NCBI GenBank assembly: GCA_002189035.1
Contig: NEEC01000004.1
Location: 5,456,001 to 5,520,000 of the forward strand
Source: Utricularia gibba
Lineage: Eukaryota > Plantae > Magnoliophyta
DNA length: 64,000 nt
Reading direction: 5' to 3'
Every line of letters starts with the position of its first letter. Positions within the stretch are counted from its first letter, which is position 1. A program made the translations under genes and the position numbers. The notes under the pieces are model-generated. The model searched no databases. It saw only the letters and a program-made list of their open reading frames with translations, and was not told the origin of the DNA. This document shows positions 17,532 to 31,382 of the stretch, in pieces.

Positions 17532-20258
17532 TCACAGAGACCTCACTGCGTGCTTTGATCTGGCTGTTTCCCTCAAGACAGCACCTACAATGGCTGCTTG
17601 CTGAAGACACTCAGCTTTGTGAAGGGCATCCAGAAGAACAACACAAGTTTTGGTATAGATATTACATCCCTTCAGCCTTGTTTCCTCGAATAACTGATAT
17701 GCTTCCTGTGGTCTGTTGGCAATGCTGAACCCTTCTATCATGGTGTTATAGCAGGCGGAATCAGGCTTACCTCCATTCTTCTTGAACCTCTCGAAGAGTT
17801 TATCCGCCTCGGATACATTCCCGGCCTTGGCGAGCCCTGATATCATGGTGAGATAAGTGATCACATTGGGTTTCAGCCCTTGTTTCTGCATGTCTTGCCA
17901 GAATACAAAGGCTTTATTGAAATTTTGGACACAACATAAGCCATTTATGATGATGCTGTAGGATACAATGTTTGGGCTACAGTTCAGTTCCTTCATGGAG
18001 TTCCAACAGACAAGGGCCTCCTCTATTTCCCCTGATTTCACTAGTGCGTCAAGCAAGCAGTTCCATGTTTGAATGGTGGGGGTTATGTTCCTCTGCATCA
18101 TCTCCTCTATGATGAGATATGCTTCGTCAATTCTACCCACCTTCCCGAAACCATCCACGAGACTGCTGTAAACAACAACATTCACCTCAATACCAATTGA
18201 TTTTGCTTCTTCAAAGAGCATATAGGCTTCATCCAGCCGGTCAATCTTTGCAAGTCCATCAATGACTGAACCGTATGTAACTACAGTTGGTTGGAGACCT
18301 TTAGCTCTCATTTCCTCTAGAAGCTGATATGCTTTGTTCACTTTCCCTGATTTGCAGAATCCATCTATCACAGTGTTATAAGCAAGAGTATCTAGAACAC
18401 ATCCCTGTTCCTTCATTGCGTAGTATATTTCATTGGTTTCACGAGCAAAACCAGCTTTTATGAGACCATGAATGAAAATTGAATAGCTCCTTGTATCTGG
18501 GGTGAATCGAGTTTTAATCTCATCGAACAGAAGTCTAGCCTTTTCTACTTCCCCAGCCCTGAAGAGACAATCCATGTATGTGTTGAGGAGTGTCAGATCT
18601 GGCGACACACCTCTCCGGATCATTTCTTTGTAAATCTTCTGTCCATCCTCCTTTCTGCCAACCTTGAAAAAATGTCTTATTAGTGATGTATAGGCAACTG
18701 CATCTGGTTTATCCTTGGAATCCAACATCAACTCATACAATCTATAGGCATCATCTACTCTCCCATTCCGACCCAAGCCATCTATCAATGAACAGAATGT
18801 ATATCTATCTGGAGTACAAACTTTATGATCCAGTCCCTTGAAAATGGACAGAGCATCATCAAGCTTGTTTGCTTTACACAAACGGTCTATCATGATATTA
18901 AGAGTCATTATGCTAGGAACCAAGCCGATCGATTTCATGTCATTTTGTATCCTCAATGCTGCATCAATTTTCCCAGCTCTACAAAGCATATCCTCAAGAA
19001 TATTATATGTAGAAAGGTTAGGCATAGCATCTTTTTTCATGTCATCAAATACCTTCAAGGCCTCATCTATTTTCCCTTTCTTACCAAGGCAACTCAGAAG
19101 ACTATTATAGGCAATTACACAAGGGACAGAACCCTTTACCCGTTGCCTATCCAAAAGGCTACATGCTTCATCAAACCGTCCAGCAAGTCCATAGCCCATG
19201 ATCATGGTGTTATAGGCATAAGCACATGGAACCGCCCTATTTGACTCCATCTCCTCAAATAACTTAATAGCTTCATCCATTCTACCTGACCTGCAAAGAA
19301 CTCCAATCATGCTTGTATACGATACATCATCAGGTGTGAGACCATGGGCTTTCACCTCATGAAAGAACTTCCAAGCCATATCCACTTTACCAACCTTGCC
19401 GAAACAGTCAATACACACATTATAGAGAACAATATCTGTCTCAATGGAATGGCTCTTCACATCATCTAACAAAGAAAGAGCAGCATCAAGACGGCCCTCA
19501 CGTGCAAATGTGCGAATGACTGTTGTGAACAGGTGCACATTAACCTCATACCCCAACTCTTGCATCTGATGAAAGAGGGAAAGCATGAGATCAGCATATT
19601 CAGGTTTATGGTCATTAGCCAATGCACCTATCAGAGTTGTATAAGCTGAAAATGCAGGGCGCAGCTTGAGTTTTCTCATAGTTTGAATAAGATTAAAGGC
19701 CTCTCTCAATCTTCGCAACTTTACACAACAGGAAACCATTTCCACACACGTATCATTAGAAGGGCCATATGCTGCTAGACTCATTTCCTCCATAAGATGG
19801 CCTAATTGGTCAAATTTCATGCATCTGGTCATCAACAAGAGGAGTGAGTCATATGCTCCCGGAAAATTCACTTTATTTGTCACCTTCTCAACCCATCTAA
19901 AATAGTTAAGAGCTATATCAGCATCCTTCAATCTTCGTATAACCCCAATAACCACACTGGCCTGAGGCTTAGCATCATATGAAGATAGAGCTTCTTCTAT
20001 TGAAGGACCCCAAGGAGCGCTCTCTAATATCATACACATATTCTCAGCAACTTGCTTAAACACTTCATTTTTTCTTGGCCTTAAACCATCTCCAGCATCA
20101 ACGGGATGAACTGGTTCTCCTCCCTTACTTAAATCCTTACCATTTTCAATATTTGTATTCGCGTCAGATTGCAAATCATTGGAAAAGAAATATCCCTGGC
20201 AGAAATTGCAGAGAACACGGTTTCTGAAATCAAAAGAATTGAACCCTGAACAAGACAT
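17532..20258 (-). CDS. P-class pentatricopeptide repeat protein (At3g06920-like)
   Basis: 908-aa uninterrupted ORF of tandem 35-aa PPR motifs. A true N-terminal exon further upstream is possible. Confidence 0.93.
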   Translation of the reverse strand: MSCSGFNSFDFRNRVLCNFCQGYFFSNDLQSDANTNIENGKDLSKGGEPVHPVDAGDGLRPRKNEVFKQVAENMCMILESAPWGPSIEEALSSYDAKPQASVVIGVIRRLKDADIALNYFRWVEKVTNKVNFPGAYDSLLLLMTRCMKFDQLGHLMEEMSLAAYGPSNDTCVEMVSCCVKLRRLREAFNLIQTMRKLKLRPAFSAYTTLIGALANDHKPEYADLMLSLFHQMQELGYEVNVHLFTTVIRTFAREGRLDAALSLLDDVKSHSIETDIVLYNVCIDCFGKVGKVDMAWKFFHEVKAHGLTPDDVSYTSMIGVLCRSGRMDEAIKLFEEMESNRAVPCAYAYNTMIMGYGLAGRFDEACSLLDRQRVKGSVPCVIAYNSLLSCLGKKGKIDEALKVFDDMKKDAMPNLSTYNILEDMLCRAGKIDAALRIQNDMKSIGLVPSIMTLNIMIDRLCKANKLDDALSIFKGLDHKVCTPDRYTFCSLIDGLGRNGRVDDAYRLYELMLDSKDKPDAVAYTSLIRHFFKVGRKEDGQKIYKEMIRRGVSPDLTLLNTYMDCLFRAGEVEKARLLFDEIKTRFTPDTRSYSIFIHGLIKAGFARETNEIYYAMKEQGCVLDTLAYNTVIDGFCKSGKVNKAYQLLEEMRAKGLQPTVVTYGSVIDGLAKIDRLDEAYMLFEEAKSIGIEVNVVVYSSLVDGFGKVGRIDEAYLIIEEMMQRNITPTIQTWNCLLDALVKSGEIEEALVCWNSMKELNCSPNIVSYSIIINGLCCVQNFNKAFVFWQDMQKQGLKPNVITYLTMISGLAKAGNVSEADKLFERFKKNGGKPDSACYNTMIEGFSIANRPQEAYQLFEETRLKGCNIYTKTCVVLLDALHKAECLQQAAIVGAVLRETARSKHAVRSL

Positions 20259-24982: not shown

Positions 24983-26073
24983 GCTCACTCCTGCAGGTTT
25001 GAAGTGGGGAAAAAATGTGCTGCAATTTTGGTTTCGGGAACTTATCAGGACACTAGAATTGTTCTTGGAACAGACAACGCTTGTAAATAATACTTATCCA
25101 CTGCGGTATCCTGCTCTTTGTCGGGGGACTAGTGATGTATGCGAAATCGTGCTTCCTCTGGCCGAGCTTACCAACTAATAATGGTTTTGTTAGGCACTCA
25201 CTATTTTTTCCCTTTTTTAATTTATTGGTTTTAATGCTGTATTTTAAGACAAATGGACGAGTGGACGGGTCCAATGCATAAAGCAAGCTCGTTTTCAGGC
25301 CCATGGCCCGAAACATGAGTTGGAGTTTTTTAAATGTTCTTTTCCTGGGCCGGTTTTCCACTCACGCTTTAGGCCGGGGGTCAGGCTCGGTCCGTGATAA
25401 CCTCATCTCTGGGCCTAAGGAAATGGGTCCGTGGCTTGTAAATAGAGGTCTGAAATTGGGCCTATGCCTAAATAAAAGCCCAATTTAAAGAACAGTTATA
25501 GGGCTGACAAATTTCCATAGAACCACCAAGATTTGTACGGGAGGTGTCCTGTCCTGCCTCTCGGCAGCAGCAGTTCGACGCAAATTCTCTTATCGTGAAA
25601 CTTACCGTATCCAGCAGCGTTCAGAACGCAAGATGATTTGATTCGTAAGTCAATGAAAAGCTTTCGTTCTCCATCCGCAACTCCCGAGATCATCTTTGCA
25701 GAATATCGGGAAATTGGCACATTTTGTAATGTTGTTACTGGAAATTTTCTGTTTTATGTTTATCCGGACGCAGTTTTTGTAGCCTGGGTTCGTGAAAGAT
25801 ATGATTTTTTAATTGAGCCATTTTTGTATCTGTCTTTCATTTAAGCTCTAGTTCCTATCTCGACCATGCTGAAATGTTGTTTCCCTCAATGGTTTTGTCG
25901 CTGTTTTTAGTTTCATTCTTGAGTCCTGCAATGAGCTTCTTTTCCTTTGATGATTGTTATTCCTTGATTTCGAATCTTTTTTTTAATTGATTTTGTCGTT
26001 GACATTATTTTGATGTGGATTTCTGTTTACATGAATCGCAGTCGATTCTATTAGAATCTTAGGTGGTCTTTTG

Positions 26074-28518
26074 ATGATGGATAGCAAGAAAATCATAGCT
26101 ATATGCCAGTCTGGTGGAGAGTTTGTGACGAACAAGGACGATGGTTCTTTGTTTTATACTGGGGGAGAAGCATATGCTCTGGACATTGACCAGCATACGA
26201 TGCTCAAAGACTTCAAGATTGAACTTGCAGATACTTTTCAATTCAGTGCAGATGCCATGGCAATCAAGTATTTTCTGCCGGGGAACAGAAAAACCCTTAT
26301 TACCATATCTAAGGATAAAGATCTCAAACGCATGATTAACTTCTTCAGGGATTCTGATCAGGTAGAGGTTTTTATAATTTCCGAAGAAGCTGCTGCACGT
26401 AATGTGTCCACCATGCCTGCCAGCAGGTATTCACCATAGTGCTGATCTGTGAAAATCTTAAGCCCTTTGTGATTGTTGTTCCACTCTTATTAACGTGAAT
26501 GCCAGCAACCTCTAGTAAATTGATGACTTTAGAAGCCTATGTAAGATTTATCAAGCTGTGTCTTTGGTTTTCTAGTTATACAAAATACTTAATTAAGTTG
26601 GTGATAGTGGAATGGGCTGTATTTTTTTATATGTTGGTTTGCTAAGCCTTTTGATCGCACAGGTCAAGCAGGACCACCATGTCCGAAGCAGCAAATCCTT
26701 CTGATATTCCTCTGGATGTCATGAAGACTGCTGTCTCCGATGAGCCTCTCGAAACCACAGCACTCAGTGTTTTCACCAATAGCAATAAGAATCGGAGAGC
26801 AGCAGCTCAGTGGGAGAATATTATTACAGGCGTCGATCAAAGATTTAATACCTTTGCAGAATTTCGTGAAGCTCTCCACAAATACTCCATAGCTCATGGA
26901 TTCACCTACAAGTATAAGAAAAATGATAGCCATCGTGTCACTGCTAAGTGCAAAACAGAGGGCTGTCCATGGCGCATATACGCTTCCAGGTTGGCTACTA
27001 CCCAATTAATATGTATAAAAAAATGGAACCCAGAGCATACATGTGAAGGAGCTGCTGTTAAGGCTGGTTATAGGGCCACTAGGGGCTGGATTGGAAGTAT
27101 CATCAAGGAGAAGCTAAAAGTTTCCCCTAATTATAAGCCAAAGGATATTGCCAGTGATATAAAGCGAGATTATGGCATTCAGTTGAACTATACTCAAGCA
27201 TGGCGTGCTAAGGAGATTGCCAGAGAGCAACTTCAGGGCTCTTATAAGGAGGCATACTCGCAGCTTCCATTTTTTTGTGAGAAGATAATTGAATCTAATC
27301 CTGGAAGTCTTGCAACGTTTGAGACCAAGGAAAATTCAAGTTTTCGCAGTTTTTTATATCATTCCATGCATGTATATGGGTTTCCACCAATGTCGCCCCC
27401 TGCTTTTTATTGACAGCACTCTTCTTTACTCCAAATATCAAGGAACTTTATTGGCTGCTACAGCTGCTGATGGGAATGATGATTTTCTTCCTGTGGCTTT
27501 TGCTGTGGTTGATGAGGAAACTGAAGACAACTGGCATTGGTTTTTGATGCAATTAAAATCTGCTATTCCTACCACAGAGCAAATTACCTTTGTATCTGAT
27601 TTTCAGAAAGGAATTAAGGAGTCCTTGATCAGCATATTTGGGGAGGACTGCTATCACGGTTACTGCTTGCGTTGTCTCGCTGAGAAACTTAATAAGGATC
27701 TGAAGGGACAGTTTTCTCATGATGCCCGACGGCTCATGGTTCAAGATTTTTATGCTGCTGCATATGCATCAAAAGTGGAGGTGTTTGATAGATGCCTTGA
27801 GAACATCAAAGTTATTTCAGCTGAGGCATTTAATTGGGTCGCAAACAGTGAACCAGATCACTGGGCGAATGTCTATTTTAATGGGGCTAGATACAACCAT
27901 ATGACTGCCAACTTTGGTCAGCGGTTCTACAGTTGGGTGTCTGAGGTGGATGAGCTGCCCATAACCCAAATGGTTGATGTTTTGCGTGAAAAAATTATGG
28001 AATTGATCTACAGGCGGCGGCTTGAATCCAATGAATGGGTGACAAGATTGACACCTTCTATGGAGGATAAACTTCAGCATGAGATTGAAAAAGCCCAATC
28101 ACTACAAATACTAAGCTCACATGGCAACACTTTTGAGGTCTGTGGAGAGTCGGTGGAGGTGGTTGATATTGATCAATGGGACTGTAGTTGCAAAGGCTGG
28201 CGCCTCAGTGGTCTGCCTTGCTGCCATGCTATTGCTGTTATTGAATGTCTTGGGCGCGACATTTATGATTATTGCGCCAGGTTCTTTACAACTGAAGGTT
28301 ACCGCTTGACATATGCAGAATCTATTAACCCAGTCCAAAATGTAGAGAAACCGGAGAAATGTGAACTTCCAGTTTCAACAATTGTCACTCCTCCTCCTAC
28401 TAAACGCCCTCCAGGCCGTCCAAAGTTGAAATTGGTGGAATCTGTTGATATAATTAAGCGGCAGCTTCAGTGCAGCAAGTGCAAGGGCCTGGGCCACAAC
28501 AAGAAAACCTGCAAGTAG
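26074..28518 (+). CDS. MUG: MUSTANG-B domesticated Mutator-like transposase (PB1 + MuDR + MULE DDE + SWIM + zinc knuckle); two frameshifts at ~27350-27380
   Basis: IIAICQSGGEF PB1 domain, YKKND, CPWRIYAS, RPLLFIDS, TFVSD, CSCKGWRLSGLPCCHAIAV (SWIM), QCSKCKGLGHNKKTC. No TIR or TSD seen. Confidence 0.9.
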
Positions 28519-29581: not shown

Positions 29582-29605
29582 CAGCTCATGAGGAGGGATA
29601 GACAA
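29582..29605 (-). promoter_or_regulatory. 3' miR390 target site of TAS3 carrying a 3-nt insertion
   Basis: Minus strand TTGTCTATCCCTCCT-cat-GAGCTG versus the canonical CTTGTCTATCCCTCCTGAGCTG. Confidence 0.9.
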
Positions 29606-29700: not shown

Positions 29701-29742
29701 CGGGTCTTACAAGGTCAAGAAAAGGTCTTACAAGGTCAAGAA
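29701..29742 (-). ncRNA. Tandem tasiR-ARF 21-mers (target ARF2/3/4)
   Basis: Two near-identical 21-nt canonical tasiR-ARF sequences, 29742-29722 and 29721-29701. Confidence 0.97.
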
Positions 29743-29779
29743 CACAACACAACACAACACACACACGAAATCACAACGG

Positions 29780-29800
29780 AAGCTCAGGCCGGATAGCACC
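29780..29800 (-). promoter_or_regulatory. 5' miR390 target site of TAS3 (non-cleavable type)
   Basis: GGTGCTATCCGGCCTGAGCTT pairs with miR390 (AAGCUCAGGAGGGAUAGCGCC) except for mismatches opposite nt 10-11 and a G:U at nt 19. Confidence 0.92.
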
Positions 29801-29808
29801 GCCATCGA

Positions 29809-29922
29809 TCACGCCTCGAAAGGAACGCCGCCGAGGCCGACGGATTCCCCTGAGACTAGGGGATGCTCCTCTTCAGACGCCGCCCTCATCATCGCTGGAG
29901 GAGGTTCGGCCACACGCTTCAT
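29809..29922 (-). CDS. TAS3 short ORF (37 aa) ending just upstream of the 5' miR390 site
   Basis: MKRVAEPPPAMMRAASEEEHPLVSGESVGLGGVPFEA*. It is the first ATG after the putative TATA and its stop lies 8 nt before the miR390 site, the known arrangement of TAS3 sORFs. Confidence 0.5.
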   Translation of the reverse strand: MKRVAEPPPAMMRAASEEEHPLVSGESVGLGGVPFEA

Positions 29923-31382
29923 TGTGCGCAGCAGGAGAGCAACTGGGAGTTGGGAGCTGAGAAGGCCAAGGATTGGGCCATATAAATTGTATGGTGGGGT
30001 GTACGGACCATACACACAAAAAAAAACACCATGTGGCTGGTCTGGTCCTCAAAATGGCCGTGGTGACTGACCCTGCTGCCCATTTCAGACAAGGTTTCGA
30101 GTAAATTCAGGCAAAATCATCAAATCTAGACGCCCGTTTCAGTAACTGATCATCAATCCATAGGGGACCATCGAAGAAGCTATTTATGTCTTTCCACACA
30201 CATTGGCTCCATCCATGAGATGAGACTTCATGTGCCAAGGTGAAAACTATAGTCTTCTCATACTGAACACACAAGTACATAACGCAAAACCTCTTCATGA
30301 CTCGACTCCGAGTATGCGCATCCTCATCCCTGACGCCCCTGGTGCAACACTAACACTGCAATCAAACACTCAGAAGCGTATGCGTCTCGATTTGATTCAC
30401 ATGTTTAACCACCCCAAAGATCCCAACAGGATCCCTCTGGACTCCCCCCGCTGTGGTCCTGTTCACTTGCTGGATAAATTATTTAACACTTCAATGAAAC
30501 AAGAAGACACAGGCAAAACAAACCTACAGTAGCCATGATTGCTGTGCCTTACTTCCGCTTGCTTATCTGCTGCTGCATTCATGGTTCCAACACAAATAAA
30601 CGAGACCATAGAGACTGATTCCTTGTTACTTGTTCTGCTACACACGAGACCGCATCCAATCATGCTCCCAACCCATGTACGCGCATAATAGCAACCTGTT
30701 CCTGTTGCTGTGAAGCCAAAAGTTATAAATGGAAGGCAGCGATGGAGGGATGCCCTCATGCCAGAACCTCAGTCACTGTATTTGTATGGTAACATAGGCT
30801 CTGAAAGTGATGCATGTATGTGTCTGCTCCTTCGCCATTGCCCACCCACTATACGACTATGCCAATTTTTATTATTTTATTACTCCTGGATATATTTATA
30901 AATAGAAAGGTGGTCCAATGAATAAACTTTAAACATCTTCTGCGGAAATAATTTTTTTTTAATAATTCCTTGGACCACACCCATCAATCGTCATTATTAA
31001 AATTATTGATTTTATATCATTTATGGTTATAAAAAAAGTGTTTACAGAAATAAACCAAGCTTTTCCCCCCTTTGTTCATCATGTCTCTTTGTTTAAAAGC
31101 GTTCTTGCAGCATTTAATGCCATTCCACCCAACCGAATTCTTTCTATTTATGGCCGGTCGGAAGCCCATATCGCGTATGTACGTGGTTTGGGCGAGGACG
31201 CCCAAATCGGACCAATAATATATGGGCCAGCGCTTCGGCCCAATCCATGCAACATTAGTTTCTGACCACATTTTCGCCACACAATTGCATTATAGGGGGG
31301 GACCGCAATTATTAGTGTTCGTATTAACAGCCTCATTTCCTTGAGAAATATTGCTAGTTAACTGCTTGGGCGTCGGTTGATC

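Follow-up and report, generated by a model that had tools for sequence, protein, structure and literature searches.

The minus strand of the window (the whole 64-kb stretch of Utricularia gibba DNA that was analysed) contains a complete long-type TAS3 gene, readable directly from the sequence, whose 3' miR390 site carries three extra bases in its seed-pairing half. By analogy with published bulged sites, this gene is on balance likely to be a functional long-type TAS3 whose 3' site can still be sliced across a bulge at miR390 nt 6/7. Phasing of the tasiR-ARFs, which control ARF2/3/4 and hence leaf polarity and auxin responses, is determined by the TAS3 3' site; a 3' site that was truly dead, or that served as a decoy, would matter for development, if true. 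The anatomy of the gene, the geometry and energies of its miR390 pairing, and the conservation of its functional blocks were all examined directly in the window.

All elements of the gene lie on the minus strand. A putative TATA box (TTTATATGG, 29978..29986) is positioned in a way that fits a transcription start ∼25-35 nt downstream. It is followed by a short open reading frame (ORF; 29809..29922) of 37 codons plus a stop, beginning with ATG and ending 8 nt before the 5' miR390 site. Arabidopsis TAS3a has a similar short ORF, and translating it reportedly influences how tasiRNAs are processed (Bazin et al. 2017, cited in PMC12884037). The 5' miR390 site (GGTGCTATCCGGCCTGAGCTT, 29780..29800) has mismatches opposite miR390 nt 10, 11 and 19, which confirms its assignment in the first-pass annotation, a model's reading of the DNA letters, to the usual non-cleavable type; its predicted duplex contains a central 2-nt internal loop. 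Two tasiR-ARF copies matching the core pattern stand in tandem over 29742..29701: copy 1 (TTCTTGACCTTGTAAGACCTT) at 29722..29742 and copy 2 (TTCTTGACCTTGTAAGACCCG) at 29701..29721, with the 19-nt core exact in both. The stretch separating the 5' site from the tasiR-ARFs (29743-29779) contains a GT-rich, microsatellite-like tract (GTGTGTGTGTTGTGTTGTGTTGTG); the canonical comparator gene introduced below has a T-rich tract in the corresponding place. The 3' miR390 site (TTGTCTATCCCTCCT-CAT-GAGCTG, 29582..29605) has its expected cut at 29595/29594. The spacer from the second tasiR-ARF to this cut is 106 nt, or 5x21+1, so that copy 2 lies 1 nt off phase cycle D6, and the earlier statement that the tasiR-ARFs fall within 1 nt of the 21-nt register holds.

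Pattern searches of the 64-kb window excluded a chance origin of these elements. The full miR390 complement, at 3 mismatches or fewer, gave one match against 0.00 expected, the tasiR-ARF core two matches against 0.01, and the bulged-site pattern CTATCCCTCCTNNNGAGCT one match against 0.02. Neither the complement search nor the bulged-pattern search returned any further miR390-like site in the window. An Rfam search of the window gave no match, as did exact look-ups of the three ORFs that overlap TAS3, and a 160-aa antisense ORF had no real match in either a word-based protein search or a full HMMER search. With its 5' site, tandem tasiR-ARFs and 3' site all in place, the feature is, as judged from its sequence, a long two-hit TAS3.

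Read in the transcript direction (29605..29582), the 3' site is TTGTCTATCCCTCCTCATGAGCTG. Pairing involves miR390 nt 7-17 (opposite 29601..29591) and nt 2-6 (opposite 29587..29583), which leaves CAT (29590..29588) unpaired and bears out both the three extra bases in the seed-pairing half and the split pairing described in the first-pass annotation. The placement can be refined. The extra bases have a T on either side, which allows two equivalent notations for the bulge: CAU at nt 6/7, or UCA at nt 7/8 (TCA at 29591..29589 in the DNA). RNAduplex places it in the second position: in its minimum-energy form with canonical miR390, nt 2-7 and nt 8-17 are paired and three target bases bulge out between them. 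In either placement (6/7 or 7/8), the site carries a seed-half bulge with pairing on both sides, and both flanking half-sites are perfectly complementary to canonical miR390. The looped-out bases also create an exact palindrome, CTCATGAG, at 29592..29585, as had been noticed. The predicted duplex energy with canonical miR390 is -27.4 kcal/mol for the bulged 3' site, compared with -33.1 kcal/mol for a canonical site and -35.3 kcal/mol for the gene's own 5' site (RNAduplex). The bulged duplex thus has 83% of the predicted energy of a canonical site (17% weaker), and at this value a quantitative weakening of cleavage is possible. Being 3' of the cut, the bulge does not disturb the register. A different, ungapped pairing anchored on the seed reaches only -17.2 kcal/mol; by count, it would shift the cut by 3 nt to 29592/29591 and leave the tasiR-ARFs 4 nt out of phase.

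The first-pass annotation had further proposed that the insertion might block slicing, as in IPS1, or turn this copy into a miR390 decoy. In the IPS1/miR399 target mimic, a 3-nt bulge at the scissile nt 10/11 blocks slicing, and what the two cases share is a non-coding RNA that is complementary except for three bulged target bases. However, the IPS1 bulge sits at nt 10/11, whereas that of the TAS3 3' site sits at nt 6/7, away from the cut; because the positions differ, the IPS1 mechanism is not transferable. The TAS3 site has no bulge opposite nt 10/11, and nt 8-17 are fully paired with canonical miR390. As mimicry needs the nt 10/11 bulge, a decoy role is unsupported, and so is blocked slicing by this analogy, given that bulges at nt 6/7 are sliced (PMC4005643).

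The evidence for such slicing comes from two systems. In Arabidopsis BCBP, six target bases bulge out between nt 6 and 7 of the paired miR398, and AGO1 slices the site at nt 10/11 (Brousse et al. 2014, PMC4005643). Shorter bulges at the BCBP site are also functional, mismatches at the miRNA 3' end help, and, among 5' and central positions, experiments have shown only nt 6/7 to accommodate as many as 6 bulged nt while slicing stays at the normal 10/11 (PMC4005643). The U. gibba 3' site resembles the BCBP/miR398 pair in its target-side bulge at nt 6/7 and its unpaired miRNA 3' end, as it carries the usual TAS3 mismatches at miR390 nt 18-21. It differs in that BCBP involves miR398 and AGO1 rather than miR390 and AGO7, a bulge of 6 nt, and a target site in the 5' UTR of a protein-coding gene instead of in a phasing trigger.

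The second system is TAS3 itself. Xia, Xu and Meyers (bioRxiv 10.1101/090647, Fig. 7B; Plant Cell 2017) describe TAS3 3' miR390 sites with large seed-region bulges in several genes. The bulge of soybean GmaxTAS3-1 measures 4 nt and falls between miR390 nt 6 and 7; the PARE data and siRNA register given in the preprint show that this site is cut and determines the phasing (10.1101/090647). The other cases listed there, with bulges of 8 or 3 nt, are a 1KP transcript of Utricularia sp. (HRUR-2002644), PvulgaTAS3-2 of common bean and StuberTAS3-4 of potato (10.1101/090647). As the preprint presents them, these sites match the one studied here in gene family, in being the cleavable 3' miR390 site and in carrying a target-side bulge in the seed half, and one of them is congeneric. 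Cleavage evidence exists for the soybean gene only, and the Utricularia transcript is equated here neither with the window locus nor with a given bulge length. Bulged TAS3 3' sites, including one from Utricularia, were thus already published in 2016-17, and the bulge is a known, ordinary variant.

The congeneric transcript also bears on whether the three bases exist at all. An assembly or consensus error could be suspected from the 1-bp losses that the first-pass annotation reported elsewhere in this assembly. CAT, though, is a 3-nt, non-repetitive change outside any homopolymer, which would be unusual for a long-read consensus error, and a bulged TAS3 3' site also occurs in the independent Utricularia sp. 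transcriptome assembly, as reported in 10.1101/090647. An error is therefore barely credible; the three extra bases are very probably real, as the first-pass annotation had surmised.

A comparison with a canonical gene addresses whether the site is maintained. The comparator consists of six JGI metagenome contigs (L001-L006) carrying one canonical TAS3 from another plant. These were picked by a metagenome scan for bulged sites, with a pattern that demanded a second GAGCT; the scan found no bulged TAS3 copy and returned these six contigs. Canonical long TAS3 genes (the Arabidopsis TAS3a type and L001-L006) resemble the window gene in their non-cleavable 5' site, their tandem tasiR-ARFs, a 3' site mismatched at the miRNA 3' end, and a short ORF whose stop lies just ahead of the 5' site. 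They differ in that the canonical 3' site is gapless (CCTCCTGAGCT), whereas that of the window TAS3 is gapped by the bulge, and in that the tasiR-ARFs occupy cycles D7/D8 in the comparator and D6/D7 in the window TAS3. In a MAFFT alignment of the two (A1), the 5' site is conserved at 19/21 positions and both tasiR-ARFs are conserved, while the spacers have diverged. The stop codon of the 37-codon ORF aligns with the comparator TAS3 stop codon, and the 26-nt block immediately preceding the bulge (CTTCTCCTTCCTTGTCTATCCCTCCT) is identical in the comparator. With these conserved blocks and an intact GAGCT beyond the bulge, the 3' site looks maintained rather than decaying.

Two nt beyond its normal 3' site, the comparator has another GAGCT seed complement (CCTGAGCTATGAGCT; e.g. 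L001:3124-3151). MAFFT renders the bulged site as a 4-nt deletion from CCTGAGCTATGAGCTG; this derivation was rejected, as the comparator's second GAGCT had been demanded by the search pattern and the resemblance is a selection artefact, so the indel may have arisen either as an insertion or as a deletion.

Set against the maintained appearance of the site is the view that the indel strongly cuts or abolishes slicing, the gene being either a decaying paralogue or a source of siRNAs triggered through the 5' site alone. It predicts poorer phasing and a lower tasiR-ARF yield, with other TAS3 copies carrying the load. The duplex energy below that of a canonical site (-27.4 vs -33.1 kcal/mol) and the tasiR-ARFs lying 1 nt out of register are what such a site might be expected to display. 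Intact tasiR-ARFs would not contradict it: one miR390 match, even a non-cleaving one, can trigger TAS3 siRNAs (de Felippes et al. 2017, PMC5435969), so that selection on the tasiR-ARFs could persist even if the 3' site no longer worked. However, both half-sites and the 26-nt upstream block are perfect and give no sign of decay, bulges at nt 6/7 are tolerated (PMC4005643), and the bulged soybean TAS3 is cleaved (10.1101/090647). In the comparator, 127 nt separate the tasiR-ARF from the cut in 5/6 contigs and 126 nt in the remaining one, so the register is itself polymorphic by 1 nt; since the same +1 offset occurs in a canonical TAS3, it is no sign of decay. A strongly weakened or dead 3' site is thus unlikely, although it deserves to be kept in mind.

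It is far less probable that the site acts as a miR390 decoy or depends on a variant miR390 or another miRNA. The 3' site is reportedly replaceable by the site of another miRNA (Montgomery et al. 2008), which would in principle allow a different trigger. A candidate variant exists as well: U. gibba expresses a second MIR390 (unitig_749:2563622-2563769) whose mature form, AAGCUCAAGAGGGAUAGCGCC, carries a G8A change (PMC8333044 Table S2). A string search of the literature main texts found no nt-8 miR390 variants; G8A is present in the supplement. Apart from the bulge position, which speaks against a decoy, the energies run against a variant trigger: G8A pairs with the 3' site at -23.3 kcal/mol, compared with -27.4 kcal/mol for canonical miR390, and any change at nt 8 gives -23.3 to -25.2 kcal/mol, all weaker than canonical. 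The idea that G8A miR390 rescues the bulged site was rejected on this ground, and the variant trigger put forward in the first-pass annotation is likewise unsupported. The ungapped seed-anchored pairing would be both weak and out of phase, as given above, and the window offers no other miR390-like site. The other ∼45 published U. gibba miRNAs were compared with the site by eye only. As a separate observation, the G8A variant would mismatch the C opposite nt 8 in canonical TAS3 3' sites as well as in the window 3' site.

The functional reading, in which canonical miR390 itself directs slicing across the bulge, is favoured by the intact functional blocks, the perfect half-sites, the published sliced bulges at nt 6/7, and the presence of both miR390 and AGO7 in U. 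gibba. Canonical miR390 is expressed in this species, the major RNA of its cluster accounting for 1154 reads (PMC8333044 and supplement), and two AGO7 copies are present (PMC8333044). Among the rows listed in the U. gibba ShortStack table, none represents an siRNA from the TAS3 locus. Under the proposed mechanism, AGO7-miR390 would bind the non-cleavable 5' site (29800..29780), while canonical miR390 would pair with the 3' site through nt 2-6/7 and 7/8-17, with three target bases looped out. Slicing would still occur opposite nt 10/11, between 29595 and 29594, and RDR6 and DCL4 would then process the 5' fragment in 21-nt steps, releasing the tasiR-ARFs at cycles D6 and D7, 1 nt off. In this way, the site at the window locus would be cleaved as in the soybean and BCBP cases and would set the phasing as in soybean, and the bulge would probably lower cleavage efficiency somewhat without abolishing slicing. 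Counted against the functional reading are the weaker duplex, the 1-nt register offset, and the fact that the published bulge scanning used AGO1 and miR398 rather than AGO7 and miR390.

Instead of a developmental lesion, the evidence points to a further example of a published tolerance, whereby plant Argonautes slice across a target bulge at nt 6/7. The window provides a genomic locus for a bulged TAS3 site in a genus for which the earlier case was at transcript level only. Standard ungapped target predictors would miss such a functional TAS3 3' site. A broader and quite speculative extension, which we consider improbable, is that every long TAS3 gene of Utricularia carries a bulged 3' miR390 site that has become fixed in the genus, the bulge predating a genome duplication. 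If true, this would amount to a lineage-wide retuning of AGO7-miR390 slicing and of tasiR-ARF dosage, possibly tied to the unusual organ polarity and body plan of the genus.

The surrounding window is gene-dense, with a GC content of ∼44%. Exact look-ups of the neighbouring PPR and serine carboxypeptidase proteins gave no match. The PPR gene (17532-20258, minus strand) is intact and encodes a 908-aa P-class protein resembling At3g06920. Its best matches in a homology search have 60-70% identity (Cornus, Cannabis, Rehmannia, Striga) and come mostly from asterids and Lamiales; it is at most 70% identical (Cornus, Cannabis) to any protein in the large collection searched, a divergence that fits a fast-evolving or poorly sampled lineage. 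Taken with the gene density and GC content, this divergence suggests a compact eudicot genome from an isolated lineage. No tasiR-ARF was found in the 10-kb flanks of the Rehmannia and Striga orthologues of this gene. Approximately 1 kb downstream of the TAS3 3' site lies a MULE/MuDR-type transposon (26071-28518, plus strand) with MuDR DNA-binding, MULE transposase and SWIM domains, and an ORF with a PB1 domain is located just upstream of it.
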